Positions 12,275 through 55,591 of a DNA stretch of 64,000 nucleotides are shown here, piece after piece. The DNA is taken from positions 248,001 through 312,000 of the IMG/VR virus record IMGVR_UViG_3300035182_002586; one strand, 5' to 3'. The position numbers were made by a program, and so were the translations under genes. The stretch's first letter is position 1. Every line of letters starts with the position of its first letter. Below the pieces are notes generated by a model, which was given only the letters and a program-made list of their open reading frames with translations, was not told the origin of the DNA and did no database searches.

Positions 12275-12475
12275 TCAACCCCCGTACTGCGCCTTGGCCA
12301 GCTTCCGTCGAAGCGTCGCTAGCTCACTCTCGGTGGCACTGATCGCGAGGTGAATGACCTCACGCATCTTCCCGTGGATGGCGAATTCGGTCTTGTACTT
12401 CCACTCGACGCCGGGTTTCTCCTCTTCGGGGCAAGGCGGGGCCTCGCCCTCCACAGGCTTCTCTTCGGGGGTCAC
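12275..12475 (-). CDS. Small hypothetical protein
   Basis: GTG 12475 overlaps the upstream TGA (GTGA); 66 aa ending in a coiled coil. Confidence 0.5.
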   Translation of the reverse strand: MTPEEKPVEGEAPPCPEEEKPGVEWKYKTEFAIHGKMREVIHLAISATESELATLRRKLAKAQYGG

Positions 12476-15400
12476 GGAGACACCGCCAGCAGCTTCGTGA
12501 GCTGATTCACTACGTCCTGTTGCGCTTGGATCCGATCCGCCACGGCTCGGGTCTGCTTGACCAGGATGCCCGTCCCCAGGTTGATCCTCGCGTCGATCCA
12601 CGTGAACCTCTTGTCGTAGAGCCTCTCGGTGCCCGAGAGCGCGTTGGTGATGAGAGCGACGGGGCCGCTGGACGGGTTGTTGATGTACGTCTGACGGGTC
12701 GTGGCCTGCGTGTATCGCGTGTTCAGGTCCGTTGTGAGCGTGGCCCGAGCAAAGGCGAGAGGGTCGACCACCGGACCCGGCTTCACAACGGAGACAGGCG
12801 TTGTGACGAGCGTGAGGAACGACTGCGTGAGAACCAGGAACGCGTCCGCTTGCAGGAGGATAGCCACGAGGTACGTAAGTGTCTGGAATCCCACTCCAGA
12901 GAAGCTCACGACTCGATAGCCTGCGGCAAGATCGGGCGTCGGGAACGCGGACGCCACAGTGATGGAGGTATCCGAGACCACCGATGCGACCTGGTAGATG
13001 CCCGCAGCGGACCCGGTTCGGATGAACACGAGATCGTTCGTGGTCACCCCGCTCGACACGAAAGTGGCAGAGGGGTCCGTCAGAGTCGTCGCGGAGGCCG
13101 ATGCTGTCGAAGGCGTAACGATGTCCGTGAACACGAGGTTCAGGTACGCTTCGATGGCAGTGCGCTCGTTGCCAAGAGCGACGACTTCGCCTTGAAGATC
13201 AGGTACGAGGGACCCTTCCAAGAGCGAGGTCGGTGCACCCCCAAAGGCGATGAGCGAGTTCGTCACCCGGTAGGCGCCGGAGGAAGCCGTCGAAGCCAGC
13301 GTGAGCTGCGTGGTGGAGTCCACCGTGAGCACCTGACGACGCTCTCCGGTCGACACACCCGTCGTCAGGACCACCGTGTGCCCCGGCTGAACCCCCGCCG
13401 CCACGAAGTCGGCGAAGAGGTCCGTGAGTGTGGTCCCAGCGATCGCGGCCGCCCCCGTTATGAGGGCGGCCGACACCCCCACCACGAACGTGAAACCTGT
13501 GTCCACGGAGGCGAAAGCCGTGTCCACCGTGACGCTGTTCGCCGTAGCCGTGACCACGCGTCGGTACGAGGTGGTGCCGTTGACCCCGGAGGTGATGCGC
13601 ACGAGGTCGTGGGCAACCGGGACCGGCGAGGGGAAGGTTCCGGCCGTGAGGGTGATCGTCGTCTTCAGTGCGTCCAGGTTTCCGGTCCCCACGAAAGGCG
13701 CGGTCGTTGCGGTGCGCAGCGTACCGCTCGGGGACTGGATGAGCTGGATCTCGTTTGCCAAGAGCCCGCCTCCCACCGAGGTCAGCTCCGCGGCGAACGA
13801 GGGCCCGACCAGGGGGAGGGTCACCTCTCCGTCGTCGTCCACCGTCCCGCCATCGAGCGCCGGGAACCGTGCTGGCGTCGTCGACGTTGCGTTGTGGTAC
13901 ACGTCGGCAGACAGGGCTTGCCCCGCCGGGATCTGCTTCGTCACCAGCGCGTTCGGGACGGGGACGGGGGAGGCCGAGCCGTCGAGGGGCGGCATGGCCT
14001 TCACGTAGGTGAGCTGCCCTTGAGCGGGGGCAAACCCGTAGCTCGCGGGCGGGTAGTGCACGTTCTCGTTGACCCCCGGCTGCGGGGAACCGCTCGCGTT
14101 CGAGTCATCACTCGGGGCGCGGTAGATGGTTGCCCCCGCAGGGACCGCAACCGGCAGACCGGGGGCGAAGGCGATGCTGGTCGGAGACGTGGCCGAGACC
14201 ACGATGGGCGACCCATCCGGAACGAGGAACGTCCCGTTTGATAGCTGGACGACACACTTCATCCCCGTGAGGAACGGGGGGCGGATGGTCGTGGCCGAAC
14301 CCTGCGCGGCATCTACGGTAAGGGTCGTGGCCCCTACGACTGCCGGCTGGGTCACCCGCGCGAAGGCAGGCCGGGTCCTCACGTTCTCCACAGACGTGAG
14401 GTTCTTCGCCCCCGTGTCGAGGATGGCATCCCCCGTGGCCACTCCAGCGGCCGCTACCCCGAACGAGTGCCGGAATGTGGGGAAGAACCGGCTCACAGCC
14501 GAAGGCAGGTAGAGAGCCTGGTACGTTCCGACGGAGACGAGCGTGAAGGTCGGGAACGTGAACGAGACCTGGTAGGGGGCGTCGGAGACCTTGATCTGAT
14601 CGTCGATCTGGTTGGTCGCCGCCTGCATGGTCGTGACGGGCGCGTTGGTGGTCAGCCCGTCAAAGCGGAAGCGCCCGCTTCGGTGCCCAACCACACGGCC
14701 GTCGAGGTTCTGGAGGACATCCTCCAGGTAGTTGATCCCGTCGTTGTAGAAGACGAGGGTGGAGCGGGCAACGATGTCCTCGTTCGCGAGATGGCCCTCT
14801 GCGAAGAACACGGAGGGGCGTCCCTGATCCGAGAGCTTCGTCTGTCCCGCGTTCGAAGTGTTGGGCCCATTCGAGGGGACGGCCGACTTCGCGTCGTCTT
14901 CGTACTGCTGCGCCAGCTCCCCCTTGAAGTTCGTGAACGTCTCGACGCGGTAGTAGAACGAGTCCGGGGAATCGATCGTGTAGTCGGACTTGAGGACCTG
15001 ACCGAGCAGACCGTTCGAGGCCGTGGGTACGATGATCGAGGTGTATGAGGCACGCACTCGCGGACCCGGGCCCACGCTACGGTGACCCGTGTAGAGGATG
15101 CCGAACTCCTCGTTGGGGAGAAGCGCGGAAGCGAAGGTGATCCGCCCTGAGTCGTTGATCGCGTAGTCCGCGGGGGACGTGAGGATCGAACCCGGCTGAC
15201 CCATCACGCGTCGGTAGACCGTGTACGGCTGCGTGAGGATGGGGGTCAGACTCGTGGAGACGGCCGACGTGCTCGCTTCCAAGACCGGACGCACGGACCG
15301 GTACAGAAGGGCGCCTCCCGTGCCCGGCGCGTACTGCTTCGAGAAGTTCTCTGCCACGAGGACGGTGGTGGCCCCCGCAGCCTTGTCGTAAGTCGAACCC

Positions 15401-18400
15401 GTGACCTGGTAGAACTCGTTGAGCCCCGTGGCGTTCTGGAAGTAGACCACCGTGCCTGCGGGGTACGTAGCGGTACGGTCCCCGACCAACACGATGGACT
15501 GCGTACCCCTCGGCGCAGCGTTCCAGTTTGCAGCTTCCAGCACGAAGTACGACGGGCGCGCCGGTGTGCTCGATGTGGGCGTGGGGCCTGACGCGAGGAA
15601 GACGTTCGGGTTCGTCACGTCGTCACGGAAGGACTGTCCCGCGGCGAGCTGCACCGTCGTGACGTTGGACGTGGTGTCGTACGTCGCCGCGGAGATGAGG
15701 TAGACCTGCTCTTTCTCGATGCGGAAGAGCAGGTCCGGCCGGAACGTTGCCGTCCAATCTCCGCTAAGGAGGAACCCGGTGTCCCCCGCGCTGGCGATGA
15801 ACTGCGCGACCGTCATGGGGGGCTGAAGGACCGTCGTGGTCTTCTCCCCTCCGAAGGCTTGCGTGACGTAGTAGTCGATGTAGACGCGTTCCGTGGGCGC
15901 GACGATCGCCCCGTGAGGCAGTGCGTCCGTGACCTGGTTGTCCGGGAGGAACCGGATCGTCCCCGCGGTCGTGTCCACGACGCACTGGACGTTGAGCGTC
16001 TGCGGTCGACCACCTCGGTAGACCGCGGGTGCGGGCTGTGACGCTACGTGTTTCCCCGTGGGGTTGAAGTGCAGGATGGACGTCGGTGTCGTGTGGGGCT
16101 GCGTGACTTCCTTCCGCACAAGGAAGGTGGCCGGCTCCGTCACGGGGGCGGAGCCGGATGCCGGGAGGTACGTCAGGTACCCTTCGTCATCCGTGAGCGC
16201 CCGCTCCGTGTAGTCGATGAGGCCCAAGGGGGGCGTCAGTCGGTAGTCCTTGGACTGCTGGAGCTGGAAGACGCCGTAGACCGTCTCTCCCAGGTTCAGC
16301 TCGGAGAAGTTCAGGTTTCCGGTCGCTGCGCTCACCTGTACGACACCGCTCGGAATGCTGGTCGGAGGGGAGAAGTACCCATCGTTCGGTACGACGGTGA
16401 CCAACGTGGACATCGTGGTCGCCCCGAACCGGAAGCGAACGTGTCCCACCTGCGCGAGCATCACGGTCAGACGAGGTGCGTTCGACACAGCCCCGAGCGC
16501 CCGCACACGCTCGATGATCGTCTGCGGATCGGCGAGAACCAGAGGAGAGAAGAAACGGTCGGCGACGATCTCCCGGCCGTGGCGCACCTCGTAGCTCACG
16601 GACGCCGCCGTGGGCGCCGCTGCATCGAGGGTGAGGGTCGTGGTCCCAACGGCGGTGATCAGGTAGATCCCTGCCGCCGCCCCCGACGGCACAAGCAAGG
16701 AGTCACCCACCGCGACTCCTGCCAGCGCGAAGTTCTTCGCCGGATCCGTGAACGTCGTGGAGGCGGTGCTTCCTCCGGTCCCGCTCGTGACGAGAGTGCC
16801 TTGCGTGGAGGTGAAGGACACCGCCCCCGACGTGTTGTCGAAGAGTGCGTCCACCCCGACAGTCAGGGGCATGTAGATGCCGGTCCCTGTGCCCGTCTCC
16901 AGCTCCAACACGACGTTGGACGCGAGGACCAGCGGGTCCGGCAGCATGACGCCCCCGACGGGCTGCAAGGTCGGGATGAGAGCCTGGTTCTTGCGCTGCG
17001 CGTACTGGAGAAGACGCTGATCGAGGTCGAGTACGTAGCCGAGACCCGCAGGCGGAGAGGCTACGTCCAGGCGAGGGAGGGCCCCCGTGAAGGAACCTGT
17101 ACCTTGCTCGACTCGAACGGTGAGCGGGAGGGAGTCGACAGGTAGGGAGGGGAGGAACACCTGCGGAGCGCCGATCACAGGGTCCGCGAACGTGGCGTCT
17201 GTCACCGGGTACAGAGCCGTCACGTCTTTCAGTGAGGGATCGCCCGCACCGAGGTTGACCGGGTTCCGGAAGAGACGGAGCGAGATACCGTGGTCGACGG
17301 GGAGGTCGCCCGTCGTGAGGGTGACCGTCTGACCCGCGTAGGACGTGCGGTCTGCCAGGGAGAACCGGGCTTCTCCGCCCAAGCCCACTCGAAGCACCTG
17401 GACGACGCCAGCCTTGCCCACAGAATCCGCGAAGGACGTCACCATCTCGAACTGTGGGAACTGCACGGTCCCCGCACGGAAGACGAGATCCCCTCCATCC
17501 GGAGGAAGAGCTGCGATCGACAGGGACGTGTACCCCGCCGGCATCGAACCGAGGGTCGAGGACGGCAACGTCAGTGCGCGCCCAAGCACCACCCCGTCGT
17601 AGTAGACGGCCTTGCCGAGGTTCGCGGCGACGTCCACGGGGCTGAGGTTGATACGCCCCGTGGTGAGAGCCCACTCGAACGTACCCGCAGCGGGGCTCAG
17701 AGAGAAAGCCCCCTCATTCGGGACTTGGATCGGCGTGAGGGGGAGCCCGTAGCCGATCCGAACCACGGGGAACTGCCCCGTCGCGGGGAGGGGGTTCAGA
17801 ACCAGTGTAGCCGGCGGGACTCCGAGGTGGCCATTCGAGTCCGTGAACGAGAAGAACCCCTGCTGCTGGAACCTGACGATCTGCCCGGAGTAGGTCGTCA
17901 GGTCCGTGGTGTTCCAGTTCAGGTTCCCCGTGGTAAGGGAGAGCTGGACGGTTCCTGCGGACGGCGCGCTGAACGCCCCATCGTTCGGGACGAGAGCGAT
18001 GGTGAACGTCGTCCCGCTGCCCACCGATCCCACAGCGATGCGCATGGGGAACAGGGTCAGGTTGGAGAGCGCCGGCTTCGGGGCCGTCAGGCGGGTCGTG
18101 TTCGAGTTGGGCCCGAGAGGGGCCGCCGCCGTGCTCGGAGGACCTCCAGGAAGCAGCTTGAAGCGCTGCTCACGCCCTTCGTAGTCGAAGCGCTGGAAGC
18201 CGATCTGTGCACCGCCTACAACGGCGCCTTCGTTCTTCGTCCAGTCGAACGAGGCCGTGGGCAGGTTGCCGTCCTGATGTACGAGGACGAGGTAGTCGGC
18301 TCTGGGGTTCGGCTCACTGCCGGTGGGGTAGGCTGCGGCATACGCGACGGAATCCGAGACGTAGTTGTCCGGGGAAGCCGTGAACGGGGAGTTCGCTGAA

Positions 18401-18447
18401 CCCACCCGCGGTCGTTCGAGGACGTAGCCTTTCAGCGCGTAGCCCAT
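12472..18447 (-). CDS. Very large baseplate/tail structural protein
   Basis: 1991 aa, beta-rich, with repeated ~45-aa modules (T[FL]TD...F...GV...D/H...G...G.Y.V..V....TL). Confidence 0.7.
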   Translation of the reverse strand: MGYALKGYVLERPRVGSANSPFTASPDNYVSDSVAYAAAYPTGSEPNPRADYLVLVHQDGNLPTASFDWTKNEGAVVGGAQIGFQRFDYEGREQRFKLLPGGPPSTAAAPLGPNSNTTRLTAPKPALSNLTLFPMRIAVGSVGSGTTFTIALVPNDGAFSAPSAGTVQLSLTTGNLNWNTTDLTTYSGQIVRFQQQGFFSFTDSNGHLGVPPATLVLNPLPATGQFPVVRIGYGLPLTPIQVPNEGAFSLSPAAGTFEWALTTGRINLSPVDVAANLGKAVYYDGVVLGRALTLPSSTLGSMPAGYTSLSIAALPPDGGDLVFRAGTVQFPQFEMVTSFADSVGKAGVVQVLRVGLGGEARFSLADRTSYAGQTVTLTTGDLPVDHGISLRLFRNPVNLGAGDPSLKDVTALYPVTDATFADPVIGAPQVFLPSLPVDSLPLTVRVEQGTGSFTGALPRLDVASPPAGLGYVLDLDQRLLQYAQRKNQALIPTLQPVGGVMLPDPLVLASNVVLELETGTGTGIYMPLTVGVDALFDNTSGAVSFTSTQGTLVTSGTGGSTASTTFTDPAKNFALAGVAVGDSLLVPSGAAAGIYLITAVGTTTLTLDAAAPTAASVSYEVRHGREIVADRFFSPLVLADPQTIIERVRALGAVSNAPRLTVMLAQVGHVRFRFGATTMSTLVTVVPNDGYFSPPTSIPSGVVQVSAATGNLNFSELNLGETVYGVFQLQQSKDYRLTPPLGLIDYTERALTDDEGYLTYLPASGSAPVTEPATFLVRKEVTQPHTTPTSILHFNPTGKHVASQPAPAVYRGGRPQTLNVQCVVDTTAGTIRFLPDNQVTDALPHGAIVAPTERVYIDYYVTQAFGGEKTTTVLQPPMTVAQFIASAGDTGFLLSGDWTATFRPDLLFRIEKEQVYLISAATYDTTSNVTTVQLAAGQSFRDDVTNPNVFLASGPTPTSSTPARPSYFVLEAANWNAAPRGTQSIVLVGDRTATYPAGTVVYFQNATGLNEFYQVTGSTYDKAAGATTVLVAENFSKQYAPGTGGALLYRSVRPVLEASTSAVSTSLTPILTQPYTVYRRVMGQPGSILTSPADYAINDSGRITFASALLPNEEFGILYTGHRSVGPGPRVRASYTSIIVPTASNGLLGQVLKSDYTIDSPDSFYYRVETFTNFKGELAQQYEDDAKSAVPSNGPNTSNAGQTKLSDQGRPSVFFAEGHLANEDIVARSTLVFYNDGINYLEDVLQNLDGRVVGHRSGRFRFDGLTTNAPVTTMQAATNQIDDQIKVSDAPYQVSFTFPTFTLVSVGTYQALYLPSAVSRFFPTFRHSFGVAAAGVATGDAILDTGAKNLTSVENVRTRPAFARVTQPAVVGATTLTVDAAQGSATTIRPPFLTGMKCVVQLSNGTFLVPDGSPIVVSATSPTSIAFAPGLPVAVPAGATIYRAPSDDSNASGSPQPGVNENVHYPPASYGFAPAQGQLTYVKAMPPLDGSASPVPVPNALVTKQIPAGQALSADVYHNATSTTPARFPALDGGTVDDDGEVTLPLVGPSFAAELTSVGGGLLANEIQLIQSPSGTLRTATTAPFVGTGNLDALKTTITLTAGTFPSPVPVAHDLVRITSGVNGTTSYRRVVTATANSVTVDTAFASVDTGFTFVVGVSAALITGAAAIAGTTLTDLFADFVAAGVQPGHTVVLTTGVSTGERRQVLTVDSTTQLTLASTASSGAYRVTNSLIAFGGAPTSLLEGSLVPDLQGEVVALGNERTAIEAYLNLVFTDIVTPSTASASATTLTDPSATFVSSGVTTNDLVFIRTGSAAGIYQVASVVSDTSITVASAFPTPDLAAGYRVVSFSGVGFQTLTYLVAILLQADAFLVLTQSFLTLVTTPVSVVKPGPVVDPLAFARATLTTDLNTRYTQATTRQTYINNPSSGPVALITNALSGTERLYDKRFTWIDARINLGTGILVKQTRAVADRIQAQQDVVNQLTKLLAVSP

Positions 18448-24910: not shown

Positions 24911-26809
24911 TCAGACCCCTACAGCAACTTCGGTGGCGGTCACAGGTAGTTCAGGGGGAGGAGGTGGAACCTTCTCGGCCCCCACATCGGTGACGGTCTT
25001 GGGGATGGCGGAAGAGGACTCGTTGAGGATGGGGTTGGGGGGCACGAAGGGCGGCGCCCCGAAGGTGAGGGCGGGATCGCTCACGTTGTCGAGGAGGAAC
25101 CACGCTCGGACCGTGAACGAGAACGAGTACTCCAGCGTGAACGGGCCCGTGTCGGCCTCGTTGATGCTGAGATTGTCGAAGCTCCCGATGTACAGGATGT
25201 TGTCGTAGTAGATGTAGATCGACCCCACGACAGAGAGCGTGGGAGCGCCCGTCTTCCCGACGATGCCCTCGTTGTTCAGCCACACGCCCCCGTTGTTCTT
25301 GTAGAGCAGGTAGAGGGACAGGAAGTTCTGGTAGCTGTCCGACATGTTGCGGCCCGTGCGGGTGAGCCCCCCACCGCCGGTGCTCATGCTGACTGCGTAG
25401 AAGCCGGCGAGCTTGCCGGACCCTTCGATCTTGTCCTGTTGTTCGCCCCAGTGCTCGATGATGGGTCCGTTACGGCCATAGTTGCCGTCGGAGATGATCT
25501 TCTCCCCGCTCACCTTGAAGCTCGTGGGGTTCACCAGGAGACGGAGAGGCGGCGTCTTCGCCATCTTGTCCAGCTCTCGCTGCGTCGCCTTGATCATCGC
25601 CTCCTGCGCAGCCTGGAAGCTCGTTCCGAGGTCGGTGAGGTTCAGGTCCTTGTTGGAGGTCTTCTCGATCGTCTTCTTCGCCGTGCTGGCGTCACCCGAC
25701 CCGCTCGGCTTCCAGTCCCCCGTCGTTGCTCCGCCAGTGGGGCCCGCACCAGGGTTGAGGGTGCCGTCGGCACCGCCCTTCAAGGCCGCCTCACCTTGCG
25801 CAATGCCGGCAGTGATCCAGTCAGGAAGGGGTTTGTTTGCGTACTCGGCCACCTGGTCGACGTTGATGGCTCCGATAGGCTCTTGGATGACCTTGCCCGT
25901 GGCGTCCTTCTTGGGTACGTCGAAGCCGGGGTTCTGCTGGTAAGCCAGGTCTTGGAAGTCCGCCCGTGGGAACTTGAACCCCGGGTGGTCCTCGATGTAC
26001 TTCTTCTGGTACGCCGCGCTGGCGTACAGGATCCCGGGGGGATTACCGGAGTTCTGGAAGCCCCCGAAATTACGGAGGTAGGCTTCCGTGGCGGTCATAC
26101 CCTTGACGCCACCCTTCGCGAAGAACTTTTCGGCCCAATAGAGCTGGTTGTCGGCCGAGGTGTTCTCGTAGTTCTTCCAGTCCTCTTCCGACATGCCGAT
26201 GCTCTTCGCGGGATCGAGCATCAACTGGTTGAGGCCCTTGGCCACGGGCACAGGGGGGTTACCCTGCTTGTTCACGGCCGTGGTCTTGAAGCCGCTCTCA
26301 CCCTTGATGACGGCAGCGAGGACCTTGGGGTCCACACCAAGGCGCTTACACATCGCCACATACTTCGTCCAGAAGTCCGGTGGTAGGGCTCCGTTGGGCA
26401 GACCCGCTCCACCACTGGTGTTCCCCTTGATGTTCAGCTCGTCGGCGAAGCCTGTGATCGAGGCTACGCTGGCCGAACGATCGAGGTGGCGTCCCGTGAC
26501 GTTGGAAGACGGGGGTAGCACCCCGATGATGAAGGGCTTGGCGTCCTTGTGGTACGCGTCTGACTGAGAGAACCCCACGAAGTCGGAGGTTGCGGGGTCG
26601 TCCTCCGTCCGGAGCCGGCTGTACTGCGTGAGGAGGTTGTAGACCTGCGGGGCGTAGGTGTCCGCCGTGTTCTCGATTTGCTGGTAGACGCGCTGCTCAG
26701 GGGAGGTGGGGGACGCCGTGGTGATGCCACCCGCAGGCACTCCTCCGGTCTCCGTGAGAACGGTGGGGGACGCGCTAGGGTCGACTCCGGTGCTTGTATT
26801 GAGTGCCAC
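24911..26809 (-). CDS. Tail-associated lytic transglycosylase fused to tube-initiator-like domain
   Basis: SLT motif VLAAVIKGESGF...AKGLNQL; the C-terminal LLVNPTSF...EHWGEQ domain is paralogous to the 26819-27550 protein. Confidence 0.7.
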   Translation of the reverse strand: MALNTSTGVDPSASPTVLTETGGVPAGGITTASPTSPEQRVYQQIENTADTYAPQVYNLLTQYSRLRTEDDPATSDFVGFSQSDAYHKDAKPFIIGVLPPSSNVTGRHLDRSASVASITGFADELNIKGNTSGGAGLPNGALPPDFWTKYVAMCKRLGVDPKVLAAVIKGESGFKTTAVNKQGNPPVPVAKGLNQLMLDPAKSIGMSEEDWKNYENTSADNQLYWAEKFFAKGGVKGMTATEAYLRNFGGFQNSGNPPGILYASAAYQKKYIEDHPGFKFPRADFQDLAYQQNPGFDVPKKDATGKVIQEPIGAINVDQVAEYANKPLPDWITAGIAQGEAALKGGADGTLNPGAGPTGGATTGDWKPSGSGDASTAKKTIEKTSNKDLNLTDLGTSFQAAQEAMIKATQRELDKMAKTPPLRLLVNPTSFKVSGEKIISDGNYGRNGPIIEHWGEQQDKIEGSGKLAGFYAVSMSTGGGGLTRTGRNMSDSYQNFLSLYLLYKNNGGVWLNNEGIVGKTGAPTLSVVGSIYIYYDNILYIGSFDNLSINEADTGPFTLEYSFSFTVRAWFLLDNVSDPALTFGAPPFVPPNPILNESSSAIPKTVTDVGAEKVPPPPPELPVTATEVAVGV

Positions 26810-37998: not shown

Positions 37999-39696
37999 AT
38001 GGAAGCAACCAAGAAATCCCGTCGTCCCCGATGGTCGGTCGTTCTAGGTACCGTCGCGGGAGTGGTCGCCGTTGCTCTTGTCGTGGCCTGGTTCGTCGCA
38101 CCTGTGATGGTGCGACGCTACGTGGAGCAGCACTACAAGGGGGTCCACATCCAAGGCGGGGTGACCCTATCGTTCCGTGGTGTCGCACTCCACGGGGTCG
38201 AGATCGACAGGGAGGGGGTCAAAGCACAGCTACCCCTCGTGCGTGTGCTCCCGGATGAGAGCGTCGTCGTAGAGGGCGGGACGGCTACCCTCACCCTGAC
38301 GGAAAAGCCAGGGGGCGGTAACAGCGACACGAAGAGACGGGTCGTGGGGTGGTTGGATGCGGCCACGGTCGTGCAGGGGGACGTCAAGGGGACTGCCACG
38401 AAGGTCACGTTCGACGACTTTCGCGTCTGCGCCGAGAAGGTGGAGGCGCAGCACCCAAAGGGTTCGGTGTCTGGTGCCACCGTCTGCGTGAGGAAAGACC
38501 GCACGCTCGTCACGGCCGAGGCGCTGACGGCCACACCGAGCTTCAAGCTCCCCTACATCGACAAGCTGCCGGCCCCGACCCCCAAGGACATCACCGTCAC
38601 TGGCGTCGAGTTCAAACCGAAAGAGCCGAGCGTATCGGTCAAGACGGCCACCTTTGGGCCGGTGTCGGTCAAGTCCGGGTACGCAGCGATCAAGTCCGCG
38701 ACCGTGTATCTCATGGGGGACGTGACTCTGGACCTGGCGGTTCTGCACACGGGGCCGATCACGTTGAAGGACGTGAGCACCAAGATCCCTGTGGCGGATC
38801 TGGCGAACCTGACGAAGATCCCGGTTCAGATCGGCCCCGCTCGGGTGGTGATCAGCCCGGGGGACATGTCCCTCGAAGGGGATGCGAAGTGCCAGGCGTG
38901 GGTCGATGCGTTGCCCACGGAGCTGCGTACGGGCCCCCTTGCCACGATGCGCCTGGAGGGGTCCTTGTCCTTCACAGTCGCCGTGAAGCCCCCCACGCCC
39001 ACGTTCAAGATGAAGGCGGACTGCCACGCCTCGTGTGAGGGGTTCAAGCCTCTGTCGGGGAAGTTCACCTACACGGCCTACGATGCTGACGGAAAGGAGT
39101 TCGTGCGCACGACGGGTCCGGGCACGAAGGACTGGACCCCGATCGGCGAAGTGAGCGCCACGCTTCCGGCCGCCGTGATGTCGACGGAAGACCCCGGGTT
39201 CCTCGGGCACAAGGGGGTCATCCCCGAGGCCATCGAGAACTCGCTGCGGGACGACCTCAAGGCCGACCGCTTCGTGCGCGGGGGCTCCACCATCACGATG
39301 CAGCTCGTGAAGAACGTCTGGCTCCGACGGACCAAGACGCTTGGACGCAAGACCCAAGAGGTCCTGCTGTCGCTCGCGATCGAGTCGTGTCTGTCGAAAG
39401 ACGTGATCATGGAGACGTACCTGAACGTCGTCGAGTTCGGCCCCAATCTCTACGGGGTGGGGCCCGCGTCGCAGCACTACTTCGGAGAAGCTGCGATGAC
39501 TCTCGACCCTGTGCGGTCGTACTACCTGGCTTCGATCCTCCCCGCCCCTCGAAAGGCTCCGCCCCCGAACACCGAGACCTTGGAGCGCATTCGCTCGCTG
39601 ATGATCCGTGTGTCGAAAGAGAGTGGACAGCTCTCGGACACGTTCGGAGCACCTAGCCCTCAGGACGAAGAGGGGTGGGTCGTCAACAAGCCGTAG
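37999..39696 (+). CDS. Membrane-anchored peptidoglycan glycosyltransferase (GT51, monofunctional)
   Basis: N-terminal basic stretch plus TM helix; C-terminal EDPGFLGHKG, RGGSTITMQLVKN, RKTQE and YLNVVEFG GT51 motifs; no transpeptidase domain. Confidence 0.9.
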   Translation: MEATKKSRRPRWSVVLGTVAGVVAVALVVAWFVAPVMVRRYVEQHYKGVHIQGGVTLSFRGVALHGVEIDREGVKAQLPLVRVLPDESVVVEGGTATLTLTEKPGGGNSDTKRRVVGWLDAATVVQGDVKGTATKVTFDDFRVCAEKVEAQHPKGSVSGATVCVRKDRTLVTAEALTATPSFKLPYIDKLPAPTPKDITVTGVEFKPKEPSVSVKTATFGPVSVKSGYAAIKSATVYLMGDVTLDLAVLHTGPITLKDVSTKIPVADLANLTKIPVQIGPARVVISPGDMSLEGDAKCQAWVDALPTELRTGPLATMRLEGSLSFTVAVKPPTPTFKMKADCHASCEGFKPLSGKFTYTAYDADGKEFVRTTGPGTKDWTPIGEVSATLPAAVMSTEDPGFLGHKGVIPEAIENSLRDDLKADRFVRGGSTITMQLVKNVWLRRTKTLGRKTQEVLLSLAIESCLSKDVIMETYLNVVEFGPNLYGVGPASQHYFGEAAMTLDPVRSYYLASILPAPRKAPPPNTETLERIRSLMIRVSKESGQLSDTFGAPSPQDEEGWVVNKP

Positions 39697-43720: not shown

Positions 43721-44559
43721 CCCACGGCGGCTCGGCCAGCTTGAAGCAGTTGCGCTGAGATCGCAGGATCGAACGAAACTGGGTTCACGTACGTCATCGA
43801 TGCGGGGGCGAAGACTCGGATACGAGGGGCCTGCCTACCCTTGAACTCCTGCTTCGTCCACGCGTCGATGTCCCCTTCCATCACCCCATCGAGAGCATAG
43901 ATCAGGGCTGCAACAGCGATGGTGGTCAACGTGAGTGCCCGCTTCGGGGGCACCACCATCCAGTCCCCGAGGCCACGCGGAAAGCAGAGGATGATGTCGA
44001 TCTCGTCGGCACCCTCTGCAACGGCCACAGACACAGGGTCGTTGCGTCGGATACCCCCATCAACGTAAGAGGCCCCGTCGATCTCTACGGGCGGGAATAC
44101 GAGCGGGATCGCCGCAGAGGCGAGCACCCACTTGGCGAACGAGGCGTCTTCGCTGCTGCTCGTGTGGACCCGGCCGCTTTGCAGCTCCACCGCGCTCACG
44201 ATGCACTTTGTGTGGAAGGTCGAGCTGCCGGTGATGTACCGCTCGACCAGGTGGCGCAGCGGGGTGGTGCTTCGGAACGAAGGCTTGGCTCGAAGCCAGG
44301 GGACGATCCCGGCAAGGGCTCCGAACCAATTCGCACGATGTACGTGACGGGTGTGGAGTTGTGACCAAAGGGCAACGAGTTCGGCCGCCCGGGCCCTCTG
44401 TTCGTCCTTCGGTGCACACGCAAGGAAGGCTCCGTTGAGGGCACCTACACTGGTGCCAACGACGAGATCCCACGTCGCCCCTTGTTCAGCAAGCCCTTGG
44501 ATAGCGCCTGCCTGGAAGGCTCCGAGAGACCCGCCGCCGCTGAGGACGAGGGCTCGCAT
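43714..44559 (-). CDS. Patatin-like phospholipase
   Basis: LSGGGSLGAFQAG glycine loop, GTSVG nucleophile elbow and VDGG catalytic Asp. Confidence 0.92.
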   Translation of the reverse strand: MRALVLSGGGSLGAFQAGAIQGLAEQGATWDLVVGTSVGALNGAFLACAPKDEQRARAAELVALWSQLHTRHVHRANWFGALAGIVPWLRAKPSFRSTTPLRHLVERYITGSSTFHTKCIVSAVELQSGRVHTSSSEDASFAKWVLASAAIPLVFPPVEIDGASYVDGGIRRNDPVSVAVAEGADEIDIILCFPRGLGDWMVVPPKRALTLTTIAVAALIYALDGVMEGDIDAWTKQEFKGRQAPRIRVFAPASMTYVNPVSFDPAISAQLLQAGRAAVGQ

Positions 44560-44570
44560 ACCCTCTCAGG

Positions 44571-44585
44571 CCGATAGGAGGGCTA
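44571..44585 (-). promoter_or_regulatory. Candidate TA-N7-TATC promoter (TAGCCCTCCTATCGG)
   Basis: 11 nt upstream of the patatin ATG. Confidence 0.45.
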
Positions 44586-44620
44586 GCAGGACCCGGATCC
44601 TCTTGTCGCCGCCCCCTGAC

Positions 44621-45418
44621 ATGACCTGGCTCCTCGGACTCGATGCCGCTCGTTGGCAAGGCAAGCTCAAGGGAAACGCACTCGACGGGTGTGTGGTGAA
44701 AGACAACGCCGGCAAGGTCGTCGGCCCCGTCAAGTTCGCGTACTTCAAGGCCACCCACGGCACCGGCGGCGTCGACGAGCAGTTCGTCTGGAACGCTACG
44801 TCGAGCGCGCCGATGAAGCGTCGCGGCTTCTACATGTGGCTCGTCCCGACGCAGGACCCTCTCAAGCAGGCGGATCACTTCTGCGATGTGGTCAGCGAGT
44901 TCGATCGTCCGACGGACCTCCCTCCGGCGATCGACTTCGAGGACGACGGGAATGGCCGTGTTCGAGGGAAAGCGCTTCTCGACATCGCACGCGCTTGTGT
45001 GATGCGTGTGGAAGAGCGCCTCGGTCTGCGCCGGTCGGTTCTCTACACGGGCAAGTGGTTCTGGCAGCAGGCGTGTGCGGACATCGACGACGACTTCTTC
45101 GCGAAGCGTCCCCTCTGGCACGCGCAGTACCCCGGACACGTGGTGAGCGAAGGCGAGAAGCCCGCCATCGCAAAGCCTTGGGCGTCACGGAACATCGCCG
45201 AGACGTTCTGGCAGTTCGACGGGGACAAGGGCCTCTTCCTCCCTGGTGAGGCAACGGCTCTCGGCAAGCCTGTCGATGCCGACTTCAACCGCTTCATGGG
45301 CAGCGAGGAAGACCTCGACACCTTCACGATGTGGGCCCGGACGCCCTCCGTGGCAGCTTGCCCGCCGGACCCGGATGCGATGGCAGACGATTGGCGCAAG
45401 CCTCCCCCCGCAGTCTGA
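44621..45418 (+). CDS. GH25 muramidase (probable endolysin)
   Basis: GLDAARWQG, FAYFKATHG, LPPAIDFE (DxE), LYTG, LWHAQY, FWQF and VDADFN are GH25 motifs. Confidence 0.88.
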   Translation: MTWLLGLDAARWQGKLKGNALDGCVVKDNAGKVVGPVKFAYFKATHGTGGVDEQFVWNATSSAPMKRRGFYMWLVPTQDPLKQADHFCDVVSEFDRPTDLPPAIDFEDDGNGRVRGKALLDIARACVMRVEERLGLRRSVLYTGKWFWQQACADIDDDFFAKRPLWHAQYPGHVVSEGEKPAIAKPWASRNIAETFWQFDGDKGLFLPGEATALGKPVDADFNRFMGSEEDLDTFTMWARTPSVAACPPDPDAMADDWRKPPPAV

Positions 45419-50602: not shown

Positions 50603-50902
50603 CTAGTCCGTCTCGTCATCATCCGAGTCAGGTGCGTCGTCGTCGGACGGCTCGGTGGGTACGGGGGTTCCAGCACGAGAGAAGATTGCTGCCTTCACCC
50701 GCCGGGACATCGTGAGCATCTTCCTGGTGGTCTCGTCGAGCACGAAGTCCAAGGGGCCCGCAGCCGACTCGAACAGGATCACGTCGCCCACGCGAACGAC
50801 GCATACCCACCAGTCATCTCGGTCGGGAATTCCGCGCACGATCACTTCCCCACCGGGAGAAATGGCTCGTGTTGCTTCACACAGGCGTCGTAGCTTACGC
50901 AT
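50603..50902 (-). CDS. Hypothetical protein with acidic tail
   Basis: GAGG SD; 99 aa. Confidence 0.55.
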   Translation of the reverse strand: MRKLRRLCEATRAISPGGEVIVRGIPDRDDWWVCVVRVGDVILFESAAGPLDFVLDETTRKMLTMSRRVKAAIFSRAGTPVPTEPSDDDAPDSDDDETD

Positions 50903-51119
50903 GGGTCCTCACCCGTGTGAGGAGACAAGAGATTCCTCGACAACTTTGCTGGGGGTCATCTTCGTGTCACGGCAGAGGATAGGTCAGGCCAAGCTCACCG
51001 CCGAAGGGGCGGGGACACCAGCCTTCTGGAGGCCCTGTCCTACCTAGCGAATTTCGCGGGCAAGTACGGCCACGGTTCGCGATAGCGCTGCGGTAACGCT
51101 CTTGTGCGCGGGCGTAGGT

Positions 51120-52052
51120 ATGCCCACCCCGTCCGCGCTCGTCTCGCGCGTCGCCCACCGTTACGCGCTCGTCTCGCGCGTCGCCCACCGGTTTGCAGCC
51201 TCCCACGAGGTCTTCGCGAGCAAGGCCCTGGCGCGTTCCTGGCCAGAGTTGGTCAGCATGGTCGAGAAGGATGCGCAGGCCGTGGGGCACTGGCGTAAGA
51301 AGTTCGTCTCGGAGTCCTTGGCCATTCTCAAGAAGGGCCGGGCCGATAGCGAGGCCATGGTCAAGGGGCCGTGGTGGGAGCGCTATCCGGACGCCGTGAA
51401 AGGGAACTTGAAGGACATCGAGTTCGTGTTCTCGACGGTCGAGAAGAACGTCAAGAAGCTCGAAACGAAGATGATCGACGAGCCTCTGGCGGGGCACGAG
51501 GTCAGCCAGATCCACATGGACCACTGGGACCCCGAGATGTTCGCAGACGGTCAGACGAAGGCTGACTACGGCCGCAAGCCCATCGACCCGATCTTCGAGG
51601 CCGTGCAAGCGGTCACCACGAAGTACCACGAGTTCTGGAAGCGCTTCAACGCGAAGTACGACCTCGGGAGCCTGAACGTCACCCTCTATGGCCTTCTCCC
51701 CGCCAGCTTGAACAAGAAGAGCCGCCTGAACTTCGAGCTGATCCAGAAGCTCGACGGGGAGGACCTGGAGAAGGCCCTCCACTGGTACAGCGGCGAGCTG
51801 GAGAAGCTCGCGAAGGAAGTCGAGAAAGAAGGTCCTCCCGGTGCCGCGAACGCGCTGTCCGTCGGTGCCGGCCTCTCGGCCCTCATGGGCGAGGCCAAGA
51901 AGAAGGGCGATCAGTGGACCGCCGACTTCGCCAAGTCCCTGATGGGCCAGGCCGAAAGAAGGCACCCGTTCTCCGACAAGCAGCGGAGCCTGCTCGATGC
52001 GAAGCTGCACGAGTACCACGTGCCACCCGTCAACTACACGATCTGGTGGTGA
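51120..52052 (+). CDS. Hypothetical protein with duplicated ALVSRVAHR[YF] N-terminus
   Basis: AGGT SD before ATG 51120; 30-bp tandem duplication at about 51134-51190. Confidence 0.7.
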   Translation: MPTPSALVSRVAHRYALVSRVAHRFAASHEVFASKALARSWPELVSMVEKDAQAVGHWRKKFVSESLAILKKGRADSEAMVKGPWWERYPDAVKGNLKDIEFVFSTVEKNVKKLETKMIDEPLAGHEVSQIHMDHWDPEMFADGQTKADYGRKPIDPIFEAVQAVTTKYHEFWKRFNAKYDLGSLNVTLYGLLPASLNKKSRLNFELIQKLDGEDLEKALHWYSGELEKLAKEVEKEGPPGAANALSVGAGLSALMGEAKKKGDQWTADFAKSLMGQAERRHPFSDKQRSLLDAKLHEYHVPPVNYTIWW

Positions 52053-52056
52053 CCCG

Positions 52057-52770
52057 ATGGCATTCCTCGGCCTCCGCGTTCCTCTCGAAACCGCCCGCCT
52101 CTTGTCCGAGGTGCCGGACGTCGCCAAGTACGGTGATCCGGAGCCGCTCGATCGGTTCCACGTGACCCTGCTCGTCCTCGGGGACATCCCCATCGAGGAC
52201 GTAGCGCGCACTATCGAACCTGTCTTCAAGGTTGTCTCCGAGACCCGGCCCTTCACGGTCTCGACGTCACACATCACGACGTTCCCGCCCGGTGAGACGA
52301 CCCCGATCATCGGGCTCATCGACTCTCCCGAGATCCACGTCCTCAGGGCCCGCCTCACCGAGGCGCTCGGGGAAGCCGACATCGAGTACAACCGCAAGTT
52401 CAAGGACTACGTACCCCACGTCACGCTTGGGTACTCCGCCCCCGACCTGCACTACGATGGTGGGATCAACGTGCACCTCCCCGTCCCGATCTCGTGGGGC
52501 GCTCACGAGCTGGTGCTGTGGGGTGGGCACGTCGACGATCAGGTCATGACCCGGGTGATCGTGACCTTCCCGTTCTCGCTCGGTCTTCCTCGTCCGGGAG
52601 ACGAACCGGAGCAAGAGAAGGCGGAAGAGCCGGAGAAGGTCAAGGACAGCATCCGCTACAAGGCTGCCGTGCGTCTCGCGATGCACGAGGGGCAGACCGG
52701 GTGGCCCTCACGCTCTAGTACGGCGAGTCGTGTGCTCAAGCGCTACCTCGGAGCCGTTCGAGGAGGCTGA
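52057..52770 (+). CDS. 2H phosphoesterase, Acb1/T4 gp57B-like
   Basis: Two H-x-T-h motifs (FHVTLL and PHVTLGY) in a context PEPLDRFHVT...KFKDYVPHVTLGY resembling Acb1 (PVPREKIHST...DFDDYTPHITLSY, recalled from memory). Confidence 0.75.
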   Translation: MAFLGLRVPLETARLLSEVPDVAKYGDPEPLDRFHVTLLVLGDIPIEDVARTIEPVFKVVSETRPFTVSTSHITTFPPGETTPIIGLIDSPEIHVLRARLTEALGEADIEYNRKFKDYVPHVTLGYSAPDLHYDGGINVHLPVPISWGAHELVLWGGHVDDQVMTRVIVTFPFSLGLPRPGDEPEQEKAEEPEKVKDSIRYKAAVRLAMHEGQTGWPSRSSTASRVLKRYLGAVRGG

Positions 52771-52774
52771 TCCC

Positions 52775-53686
52775 ATGCCGATGCAGATCGAGTGGTGCTC
52801 AAGGTGCAGTGCAGCGATCTACGACGTAGACGACGTGCCCGGAGCCTGCGGTTGCCCTGATGGGCAGCTTCGGGGCCTCCTCGCCATGCGCCGGATCGCA
52901 GCCGGAACCCCCGCCCCTCAACCCGTGGCGTCCCCGCCCCCGGTCGTGACGCCCTCTTGGGACACCATCCAGGTGGCCGTTCAGAAGGCCGTGCGAGCTG
53001 CCGTGCAGGCTCCTGCACGGGCCCCGCTCGTCACTCCGATCGCCACTCCGATCGCCCCCACCTCCGGTTTGCCGGACCTCACCCCCGACATACTGATGTC
53101 CGGCAACGCACTCGCTGAGTACCAAGCGATGCGATCTGGAGTCATCCCGAGCAGCAGCCAGGCACCCGTTCGAGGGCGTCGTGGGGACGAGCCCGTCGAA
53201 GTCTCGTGGGACGACAACGGTGAGGACGCCCCGCCTGTCACGGGGGCGCTCGAAGAGCTGTGGCTCGGGCGCGCCGAGATGGAGCAAATCGCGAGCAGTG
53301 GGGTGGACATCGAGTTCTCGACTCCCGACGAGTACGAAGCTCCCTCTCGCCCTCGCTACAGCGAAGCCGCCCGCTTCCGTGTTGATCGACCCCCGCCCCG
53401 TGCCCCCACTCCTACTGGACCTCGGGTAGGCGGAGTCGTTCGACAAGACGGGGAGGTCGTGGGGAGCCGTCAGGCACTTCGACAGACGGCCGCATCGGCC
53501 CCCCCTTCCCTGCGCGAGATCCGGCAACGGGCTCGTGAAGGCGTCGTCTCACCGCCCCAAGAAGTTCGGGTAGCCGTCCGAACGGCCCCTGTTCGAACCG
53601 CCCCTGCCCGAACGGTCCCCGCGGAGCCCCCGCCCATGTCCGCGTACGAGCGGATCATCAACGGGCAAGGCCCCCTCGACGACTAG
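52775..53686 (+). CDS. Hypothetical protein, N-terminal Zn ribbon, Pro-rich disordered body
   Basis: WCSRC...ACGC; GGAGG SD. Confidence 0.6.
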   Translation: MPMQIEWCSRCSAAIYDVDDVPGACGCPDGQLRGLLAMRRIAAGTPAPQPVASPPPVVTPSWDTIQVAVQKAVRAAVQAPARAPLVTPIATPIAPTSGLPDLTPDILMSGNALAEYQAMRSGVIPSSSQAPVRGRRGDEPVEVSWDDNGEDAPPVTGALEELWLGRAEMEQIASSGVDIEFSTPDEYEAPSRPRYSEAARFRVDRPPPRAPTPTGPRVGGVVRQDGEVVGSRQALRQTAASAPPSLREIRQRAREGVVSPPQEVRVAVRTAPVRTAPARTVPAEPPPMSAYERIINGQGPLDD

Positions 53687-54048: not shown

Positions 54049-54226
54049 GACCAGAGGATAGCCGCTACCCGGTGTACCGGCACGCCCATGCGACGGGTTG
54101 GGTTACCCGTTCTGGGGAAATCGACATCGACCCCCATCAGCTTCCTTGACAACACCTACGCTGTTGAGGAAACACTACAACCCTCCGTGACCTAATCGGA
54201 ATCGGATCAGAACAAGGAGACGTCTC

Positions 54227-54457
54227 ATGCCCGCTGCGAAGAAGACCACCGCCAAGAAGACCACCGCCAAGAAGACCACCGCCAAGAAGGCCCCCGCGAA
54301 GAAGGCCGCCCGCAAGACCACCGCGAAGAAGGCCCCCGCGCGCAAGACCGCGGCCAAGAAGGCGCCGGCCAAGAAGGCCGCGCGCAAGCCCGCCGCCAAG
54401 AAGGCCGCGCGCAAGCCCGCCGCCAAGAAGACGGTCGTGGCGCCCCCGGCGATCTGA
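54227..54457 (+). CDS. Histone H1-like Lys/Ala-rich DNA-binding protein
   Basis: (A/T)AKK and PAKKAARK repeats across 76 aa; AAGGAG SD; own terminator. Confidence 0.85.
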   Translation: MPAAKKTTAKKTTAKKTTAKKAPAKKAARKTTAKKAPARKTAAKKAPAKKAARKPAAKKAARKPAAKKTVVAPPAI

Positions 54458-54478
54458 TCGTCGCGGTCCGACACGTTG

Positions 54479-54517
54479 AAGGCCCGCCCCTGAAAAAGGA
54501 GCGGGCCTTCGGTTTTT
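54479..54517 (+). terminator. Intrinsic terminator after H1-like gene
   Basis: AAGGCCCGC...GCGGGCCTT stem followed by CGGTTTTT. Confidence 0.75.
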
Positions 54518-54532
54518 CCGGGCCTTGGGAGG

Positions 54533-55591
54533 TCAGAAGTCCTTTCGGTCGACCTCGTGGTACCCGCACACTCCATCATCCAGGACGACGAACCGCTTCC
54601 CGTTGTTCGTGTCCTTCTCGTCGATACGGGTCCAGAACCGGATCTTGCGCCCCGCCCGATGGGGCAGGACGTAGAGGCACTTCTTGATGCCGGGGTTCAC
54701 GGGGTTCTCGTACGAGATGAAGAGGACGTTGCCCTTGTCCCGTACGATCATGCTCTCGGGGATGTCCCGGATCGACCGGTAGGGGACGATCGTGAAGTTG
54801 ATGTTGATGCTCCTGCCCTTGAGCGTCCCCGAGGGGATCGTCCCATGGGCGGACCCGATGGCGACGTAGCGGGCGCCCTGGAACTCGAACGTCTCCAGGA
54901 ACGGGTGGGACATCTTCGGTGCATAGCTCTCGCGCATGATGGTCCAGAGCGGCCCCTCCGACCGCATGAACGGGTGCTCGCTGAACTGCGCGAACTCGTC
55001 GTGTTCCGCCTCGTTGATCAGGTCGTAAAACTCCTCGTCGCTGATGTAGACGTGGGAGTCCGAGGGCCGGGGACCGGGGATGATCTCCGGGGAGGCCGCC
55101 AGCTCGTCCACCAGTTCCTCGTCCGACTTGCCGAGGAACCGGGTCGGAGTGCTGTCCGTGACGGGCAGCCATTGCAGACCGGGGTTCGGCGTGTTCAAGG
55201 AGGGCTTCGAGGGACCTGCGCTATCGATGGGTGCAGGCACCGGAGGAGCAGCCTCCACAGGCGCGGGCGACACTACCGCGTCTTCCCTCGCCCACTCGGG
55301 AAGACCAGTGCCCCCAATGCGGACGATAGCGTCCTGGTAGGTCGTCCTCGCGTACTTCTTGTCCGTCGAGTCCGCGTCCTTGCTCGTGAGCACCGTCCGC
55401 AGGAAGTCGTCGAGAACCCCCTTGAGGGTGCCGGCCTTGATGGCGGCGTCGATGACCTTCTCGCGGAACACCCTGACGACGAACTTCTCCGTGCCGATCT
55501 TCCTCTGCTCGCGGCTACGCCGCGACGTGGCCTCGTGGGCCTCACGCTCTTCCATGGGATCCTCGCTTGCTTGCAGCACTTGCAGAGGCAT
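54533..55591 (-). CDS. Hypothetical protein
   Basis: 352 aa; two domains joined by a Pro-rich linker; start may be 55555. Confidence 0.6.
   Translation of the reverse strand: MPLQVLQASEDPMEEREAHEATSRRSREQRKIGTEKFVVRVFREKVIDAAIKAGTLKGVLDDFLRTVLTSKDADSTDKKYARTTYQDAIVRIGGTGLPEWAREDAVVSPAPVEAAPPVPAPIDSAGPSKPSLNTPNPGLQWLPVTDSTPTRFLGKSDEELVDELAASPEIIPGPRPSDSHVYISDEEFYDLINEAEHDEFAQFSEHPFMRSEGPLWTIMRESYAPKMSHPFLETFEFQGARYVAIGSAHGTIPSGTLKGRSININFTIVPYRSIRDIPESMIVRDKGNVLFISYENPVNPGIKKCLYVLPHRAGRKIRFWTRIDEKDTNNGKRFVVLDDGVCGYHEVDRKDF

Follow-up and report, generated by a model that had tools for sequence, protein, structure and literature searches.

A huge-phage 2H phosphoesterase with a terminal tag shared by other proteins of the same genome

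Two groups of described 2H phosphoesterases are relevant to the gene studied here. The LigT/ThpR RNA 2',3'-cyclic phosphodiesterases, for example Escherichia coli ThpR, the CPDase of D. radiodurans (5h7e) and the T. thermophilus protein 1iuh, have two HxT motifs on a full two-lobed 2H fold of about 180 aa. Acb1 (T4 gp57B; Pfam PF23474), an anti-CBASS 2H nuclease, is compact (about 150 aa) and has a C-terminal lid of about eight residues (PMC9117128). 2H domains have further been described, together with zincin-like peptidases, in polyvalent and MuF- or portal-fused phage proteins which are thought to enter the cell with the DNA, and for which degradation of nucleotide signals or an action on RNA has been proposed (Iyer et al., 2017, PMC5512222). 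With respect to protein targeting, the T4 capsid targeting sequence of internal proteins and the cargo-loading peptides of encapsulins are short terminal peptides shared by unrelated proteins. Known cases load cargo into an HK97-fold shell. The T4 sequence is N-terminal and is cut off by the prohead protease, while encapsulin peptides occur at either terminus. A short helical motif, LARLANEFFS, lies in the N-terminal domain that loads cargo into a family 2A encapsulin (PMC8049743).

The protein analysed here, which we refer to as P0001, shares the two HxT motifs and the full-size fold with LigT/ThpR, at only 15–23% identity, but belongs to a phage-specific clade with an extra C-terminal linker and helices. 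With Acb1 it shares the HxT/HxT tetrad, the sequence context of the second motif and phage origin, and two aromatic residues align with W74 and F107 of Acb1; it carries, however, a 60-residue tail of a different nature. In the polyvalent, MuF- or portal-fused proteins the domains are covalently joined to a head protein or within a multi-domain polypeptide, whereas P0001 is a stand-alone protein of 237 aa with a short tag, and the long 2H homologues examined carry no MuF or portal domain by Pfam. The tag resembles capsid-targeting and cargo-loading peptides in being short, terminal and common to unrelated proteins of one virus, but its likeness to the encapsulin motif is slight and covers only about six positions.

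The 2H gene and its neighbours

The window, that is the whole stretch of 64,000 nucleotides analysed, comprises bases 248001–312000 of a 528,957-bp IMG/VR virus record (IMGVR_UViG_3300035182_002586) with 64% G+C. IMG/VR labels the record 'provirus' with 100% completeness, and the same protein is recorded on a 620-kb contig. The record is a huge tailed phage without a near relative among 50,697 deposited phage genomes. The window carries a tail and baseplate block on the minus strand, including a Baseplate_J protein, an SLT transglycosylase domain and a 1991-aa ORF that may be a tape measure protein. Elsewhere, the record encodes a major head protein (phrog_2522, E 4e-53), a prohead protease and a Gln/Ala-rich scaffold-like protein. 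In record coordinates, the gene of the major head protein lies at 343027–343959, that of the neighbouring head protein at 344007–344696, that of the Q-rich scaffold at 344771–346282 and that of the protease at 346326–348050. Searches for a portal (PF04860, PF05133) and for a T4-type head protein (PF07068) found nothing.

The features of the locus are listed in Table 1. The start of the 2H gene at ATG 52057 is supported by an alignment of 20 homologues, in which M1 and A2 are invariant and the opening MAF[LI]G is near-invariant; a longer ORF from 51997 would overlap the upstream gene. H35, T37, H121 and T123 are invariant in the same alignment, and in 150 homologues H121 is invariant with the other three near-invariant. 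The preliminary description had noted the two HxT motifs, an acidic linker (GDEPEQEKAEEPEK, residues ~182–195) and a C-terminal end (STASRVLKRYLGAVRGG) similar to a motif of the upstream gene, and we could confirm all of these observations. The C-terminal SRVLKRY matches SRVAHRY and SRVAHRF, which stand ten residues apart at the start of the upstream gene.

Table 1. Features of the locus; positions are those of the window.
Position (strand)	Feature	Properties	Supporting observations
51120..52052 (+)	Upstream gene, likely start ATG 51120	310 aa; all-helical (predicted), function unknown; N-terminal tag and invariant WDPEMFADGQTK core; conserved partner of the 2H gene	Eleven homologues; AF2 pLDDT 84, helical bundle, no informative fold match
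51144..51194 (+)	Two tandem copies of the tag	SRVAHRY at 51144-51164, SRVAHRF at 51174-51194	PSSM scores 20.8 and 21.4 bits; 30-nt DNA unit duplicated almost perfectly
52057..52770 (+)	2H phosphoesterase gene (P0001)	237 aa; starts 4 nt after the stop codon of the upstream gene	
52057..52590 (+)	Catalytic 2H domain	Residues 1-178; H35-V-T37 at 52159-52167, H121-V-T123 at 52417-52425	AF2 pLDDT mostly above 90
52600..52644 (+)	Acidic, probably disordered linker	GDEPEQEKAEEPEKV	Shared only with the closest homologue, P0002; lowest pLDDT block, 65
52630..52683 (+)	First tail helix (predicted)	Residues 192-209, IRYKAAVRLAMHEG	Degenerate counterpart of the RAFVQLAKNW helix that ends many homologues
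52717..52755 (+)	Terminal tag, predicted helical	STASRVLKRYLGA, residues 221-233; core R225-Y230 at 52729-52746	PSSM 25.5 bits, the best site in the genome; helix 222-235 in the model
52775..53686 (+)	Downstream gene, start ATG 52775	303 aa; 4 nt after the 2H stop codon, preceded by GAGGAGG; N-terminal Cys4 ribbon-like motif, then Pro/Ala-rich sequence; no tag; probably third gene of the operon	No Pfam hit; a similar CxxC...CxxCG ribbon lies inside the 2H tails of homologues P0003 and P0006

The three genes look like one operon. A scan for sigma-70 promoters and terminators around it found nothing above chance, and a k-mer search of intergenic DNA for a shared promoter found only a CRISPR array and tRNA T-loop k-mers. 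The pairing of the upstream gene with the 2H gene was seen directly in one other locus (L020), where the next gene downstream is tagged as well. In two further cases, the homologues of the two genes have a longest contig of identical size (2950 and 44325 bp). For the upstream gene, searches of Pfam, PHROGs and the ESM Atlas, Foldseek against viral models and VIA-align against PDB revealed only generic helical bundles.

Placement of the catalytic domain

P0001 passes the Pfam cut-offs of 2_5_RNA_ligase2 (PF13563, 57.7 bits against 27) and LigT_PEase (PF02834, 44 bits against 23.3), but remains below that of Acb1 (21.5 bits against 27). AlphaFold2 with a 150-sequence alignment gave a model with pLDDT 87, in which the two tail helices are at 65–77. 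The comparison of folds, which had been proposed beforehand as a check on the Acb1 assignment, placed LigT/ThpR-type cyclic phosphodiesterases (5h7e, 1iuh, E. coli LigT) at ranks 1–20 of the Foldseek search against PDB (E about 1e-9, TM about 0.71, 181–189 aligned columns, the whole domain) and Acb1 (7t26) at rank 21 (E 1e-6, TM 0.62); all top matches are 2H proteins. The family profile searched against PDB sequences hits 5h7e at 5e-9 and Acb1 at 1e-4. By hhalign, however, the family alignment is about equally distant from E. coli ThpR (probability 92.5, 147 columns, 18% identity) and T4 gp57B (probability 93.6, 92 columns, 27% identity). Among the 150 family members, LigT_PEase is hit by 124 and the Acb1 model by 79 at E<=1e-5, the best Acb1 hit being 1.7e-11, so that the clade borders the Acb1 family.

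At the residue level, the context of the second motif in P0001, F-K-D-Y-V-P-H-V-T-L-G-Y, closely matches F-D-D-Y-T-P-H-I-T-L-S-Y of T4 (F-x-D-Y-x-P-H-[VI]-T-L-[GS]-Y). Of the residues which stack on the bases in Acb1 (PMC9117128), W74 aligns with F76, which is invariant in the family, and F107 with the conserved F115; Y12, E141 and the W147 lid fall outside the 92 aligned columns. The tail of P0001 consists of the 60-residue linker plus two helices and is not a short lid. The Acb1-like impression of the preliminary description is therefore correct for the second motif. We nevertheless do not assign the protein to Acb1. It is an intact full-size 2H domain, nearest to LigT/ThpR by Pfam and fold, from a clade that sits between the two families and is found almost only on large phage contigs; its substrate is not settled by sequence. 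That P0001 is a true Acb1-type anti-CBASS or anti-type III nuclease rather than an RNA end-healing enzyme remains a tentative alternative, in favour of which it may also be said that the gene stands alone, away from ligases.

A modular tag at protein termini

Most of the first 75 homologues found are 180–200 aa long. About 40 of them end, directly after the last strand of the domain, in a motif of the form [small]-A-x-[RK]-V-[AVL]-x-R-[FYW]. Among 146 further representatives 18 more carry it, some at the end of proteins of 469–732 aa and some at a domain junction. Another group of homologues ends in RAFVQLAKNW, and proteins such as P0067 (KAAVRVAQRFL) show that this is the same helix in a diverged form. 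P0001 and its five nearest relatives carry both, a degenerate first helix and a full tag. The possibility that RAFVQLAKNW is a second tag of multiple proteins was rejected, as it occurs only in the 2H family.

To search for further bearers, we built a position matrix from the tails of homologues in other metagenomes and scanned the whole record. In the predicted proteins 13 hits exceeded 15 bits, compared with 0.4 in shuffled proteomes, and a six-frame scan brought the number of credible bearers to about 17. Exact RVAHRY occurs in two different proteins. Eleven proteins carry the tag at the N-terminus, typically as M-D-x-x-A-x-R-V-A-x-R-F-L-x-A, four carry it within 25 residues of the stop codon, two proteins have one at each end, and two or three have it at an internal junction. 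For many of the N-terminal sites, where an open frame runs further upstream, GC3 falls from 0.83–0.93 inside the gene to 0.36–0.65 just before the tag, which places the start codon at the tag. The codons for the conserved R and V differ from copy to copy (CGT/CGC/CGG/CGA and GTG/GTC/GTT/GTA), indicating that selection acts on the peptide and excluding a repeat at the DNA or RNA level. A twin-arginine signal was also rejected, as the spacing is wrong and many tags are C-terminal. The tag is duplicated in tandem in two proteins, the upstream gene product and one 2H homologue (P0049).

Among the tagged proteins are a HAD phosphatase of the 'Swiss Army Knife' RNA-repair type, which is Pnkp-like and also matches the PHROG named polynucleotide kinase, four paralogous zincin-like peptidases (HExxH, then E-x-F-A-E-x-F), a 1403-aa protein that heads the run of genes ending in protease, scaffold and major head protein, a protein with a long Cys-rich CxCGG repeat after the tag, and several helical proteins without any match. 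The 1403-aa protein showed no Pfam, PHROG or Atlas match. A tblastn search with a tagged peptidase against cultured phages gave two unannotated hits. The tag is conserved in orthologues of three unrelated families: the 2H family; the upstream-gene family, where ten of 11 members have an MDxxAxRVAxRF-type N-terminus that stands out against 34–59% overall identity; and the HAD family, where the six nearest relatives have it and the more distant ones stop right after the domain.

A profile of 65 instances finds 7–9 sites each in three of four other high-GC huge-phage records of 372–448 kb, one site in the fourth, and none in a 481-kb low-GC record. Twenty of these sites were inspected, and they are again mostly right after a start codon or right before a stop codon. 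V and R are invariant and the aromatic residue is near-invariant at fixed spacing across the 65 instances. The aromatic position of the motif is typically followed by a hydrophobic one. Written as a helix, the motif has one hydrophobic face (positions 1, 2, 5, 6, 9, 10) and two arginines four residues apart, which suits docking into a groove.

Possible roles of the tag

The sequence data themselves establish the intact 2H phosphoesterase, the flexible acidic linker and two helices (as modelled) behind its catalytic domain, and the modular nature of the last helix, which this phage and its high-GC relatives place at the extreme N-terminus (usually straight after Met-Asp) or the extreme C-terminus of many unrelated proteins. 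What the tag binds, whether its bearers enter the head, and the catalytic activity of the enzyme are inferences. The interpretation in the preliminary description, an Acb1-like enzyme with a possible virion-packaging tail, is thus only partly supported: the tail is real and much more widespread than could be seen from the locus, but packaging stays a hypothesis with circumstantial support.

In the reading we favour, though only tentatively, tagged proteins dock through this helix onto one conserved receptor, most likely the inside of the assembling head, and would be enclosed and delivered with the DNA. This would resemble the T4 capsid targeting sequence or an encapsulin cargo-loading peptide, but here it would serve a set of separate enzymes. 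As a precedent, short terminal helices that load cargo into HK97-fold shells are known, and the family 2A cargo motif LARLANEFFS has a similar pattern, although over only about six positions. The tagged set contains a 2H domain and four zincin-like peptidases, domains which Iyer et al. describe in polyvalent or MuF/portal-fused proteins that are packaged and injected, and one 2H homologue (P0106) is fused to such a peptidase. Foldseek finds 2H domains inside large actinophage 'capsid morphogenesis' and 'structural' proteins. The nearest cultured-phage homologue, Arthrobacter phage Wheelbite gp18, lies between the portal/protease genes and the major head protein gene. Three tagged genes, one of them encoding the 1403-aa protein, lie within 10 kb of the major head protein gene. 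The major head protein is 92–94% identical among tag-bearing genomes, compared with 52–68% for the protease, 63–66% for the neighbouring head protein and 42–45% for the 2H enzyme, and only 38% identical in the tag-less genome. A receptor holding one motif constant across these genomes would have to be that conserved, but major head proteins are usually the best-conserved phage proteins anyway, so that this evidence is weak. A complex prediction of the major head protein with residues 205–237 returned no answer (score 0.00) and counts neither for nor against binding. Most tagged genes are scattered over the genome, and no shared cleavage-like motif was seen on inspection of the flanks of the tags, a weak test as the specificity of the protease is unknown. 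The 2H gene is not next to any RNA ligase; the ligase-like genes lie at about 464 kb and 39 kb of the record. The slightly raised GC3 of tagged genes, taken as a proxy for expression, gave only p=0.02 on a gene set that was itself chosen by GC3. On entry, the enzyme might heal 2',3'-cyclic phosphate RNA ends, working with the tagged Pnkp-like phosphatase, or cut nucleotide immune signals as Acb1 does, alternatives which sequence cannot separate.

The main rival, which we consider less likely, is a hub outside the virion, such as an RNA-repair or counter-defence complex or a replication or translation factory, with the 2H enzyme, the phosphatase and the peptidases acting together in the infected cell. 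It is favoured by the presence of the two classic RNA end-healing activities, a 2H cyclic phosphodiesterase and a Pnkp-like HAD phosphatase, among the tagged proteins, by an RNA ligase-family gene and an RtcB fragment in the genome, and by the dispersal of the tagged genes; terminal docking peptides on a dozen or more clients are also the pattern of sliding-clamp clients in cells. However, no candidate hub was found, the motif does not resemble known clamp or SSB-partner motifs, and four peptidases and many unknown helical proteins do not fit a repair complex. Iyer et al. also note that phage 2H domains of this kind do not associate with RNA ligases. A proteolytic element appears unlikely, be it a degron timing the removal of early proteins or a site at which the tagged peptidases process one another and their clients. 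Degrons, as in ClpXP substrates, are short and terminal, four tagged proteins are peptidases, and in longer fused homologues the tag lies at domain junctions (P0201 residue ~224, P0093 ~339; also the 1403-aa protein ~1138), where a processing site would be expected. Yet simple fusion of tagged modules gives the same position, and the strict RV..R[FYW] pattern and the helical prediction suit docking better than an unfoldase tag. Least likely is a membrane-binding or self-associating amphipathic helix without a specific receptor. The hydrophobic face with two arginines resembles membrane-targeting sequences such as those of MinD and FtsA, and the helices are predicted with moderate confidence only, but membrane helices tolerate far more variation than is seen in the 65 instances, which point to a specific partner.

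The enzyme alone is an ordinary addition to a known superfamily, and delivery of a 2H domain with the virion was predicted in 2017. What is new is the shared tag, which marks a defined set of huge-phage proteins, most without recognizable function, as belonging together; we found no paper describing such a tag in huge phages, although the literature searched was not complete. It is possible, but far from certain, that a clade of uncultured 370–620 kb phages uses this one peptide at either protein end as a general signal for loading about 10–20 separate enzymes and unknown proteins into the head for delivery with the DNA, a phage counterpart of encapsulin cargo loading and a polyvalent protein split into separate pieces. 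If so, the tag would list the injected proteins of the clade from sequence alone, would explain how first-minute counter-defence is organized in phages too large to rely on one polyvalent protein, and would give a short portable peptide for loading foreign proteins into an HK97-type shell. If the tag docks to something else, it still points to an unknown hub with many clients. In the low-GC relatives, the 2H protein ends in a different conserved tail, LTPSxERRKxER, which within 20-kb loci was seen only on the 2H protein.

Tag duplications and sequences beside the tag

The tag at the start of the upstream gene is doubled by an almost perfect 30-nt tandem duplication. One homologue of the 2H protein (P0049) also has two tags in tandem. 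A Cys-rich knuckle (CxCGGxCxC), in one case a 30-residue run of such units, often lies directly before or after the tag. It was found in a minus-strand gene of the record outside the window, in the homologues P0048, P0088, P0093, P0096 and P0149, and in a further locus (L047). In low-GC huge phages (loci L038–L074 of the low-GC relatives) the 2H protein ends in a different conserved tail, LTPSxERRKxER, and two of these loci (L062 and L066) have a ParB-like domain inserted before it.

Other genes of the window and of the record

The minus strand at the beginning of the window carries a tail and baseplate module of very large genes. In addition to a Baseplate_J protein and an SLT-domain protein, it contains a 1991-aa ORF, which may encode a tape measure protein, and several ORFs of 1100–1170 aa without a Pfam match. 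Two cell-wall enzymes are encoded on the plus strand: a 565-aa protein with a PBP-type glycosyltransferase (Transgly) domain, which is unusual for a phage, and a GH25 lysozyme. A possible plus-strand Ala/Lys-rich repeat ORF consists of AKKTT/AKKAP units and is histone H1-like, but minus-strand ORFs overlap it and may instead be the coding ones. This stretch gives the only DNA match to a cultured phage (Rhodococcus phage REQ2, 75% over 100 nt).

Outside the window, the record contains a CRISPR array of nine 36-nt repeats (GTCTCGGCGTACCGAGCAATCTGCGTGCGTTCCTAG) with spacers of about 37 nt (locus L086). The array lies next to the gene for a 796-aa protein with a Cas12f1-like TNB domain, so this is a phage-borne compact Cas12-type system. 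A 99-aa protein encoded elsewhere in the record ends in DEDDDIPF, the signature C-terminal tip of bacterial SSB. For RtcB, only the last ~90 positions match, in a 138-aa open frame, which may be a fragment or a split gene.

Coordinates of the additional features (window or record positions as indicated)
Feature	Reference	Position	Strand
Tail and baseplate module	window	1-37000	-
Baseplate_J protein	window	3835-7296	-
1991-aa ORF, possible tape measure protein	window	12472-18447	-
SLT-domain protein	window	24911-26809	-
Protein with PBP-type glycosyltransferase (Transgly) domain	window	37999-39696	+
GH25 lysozyme	window	44351-45418	+
30-nt tandem duplication doubling the tag	window	51135-51194	
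Ala/Lys-rich repeat ORF	window	54227-54457	+
ORFs overlapping the Ala/Lys-rich repeat ORF	window	54175-54579	-
Gene with Cys-rich knuckle	record	50764-51399	-
Partial RtcB match	record	116020-116316	+
99-aa protein with SSB-type C-terminal tip	record	328075-328374	+
CRISPR array (L086)	record	501190-501860	
Protein with Cas12f1-like TNB domain (L086)	record	501846-504236	
acb1 (57B) and ipI (L112)	phage T4 record	73591-74410	

Head protein matches in related genomes and the acb1 locus of T4

Besides the main head protein gene, each of the related genomes (other records, G001–G004) holds one to three extra partial matches to the major head protein, with 46–56% identity over 34–134 residues. In phage T4, the acb1 gene (57B) lies directly next to ipI, the gene of a packaged internal head protein.
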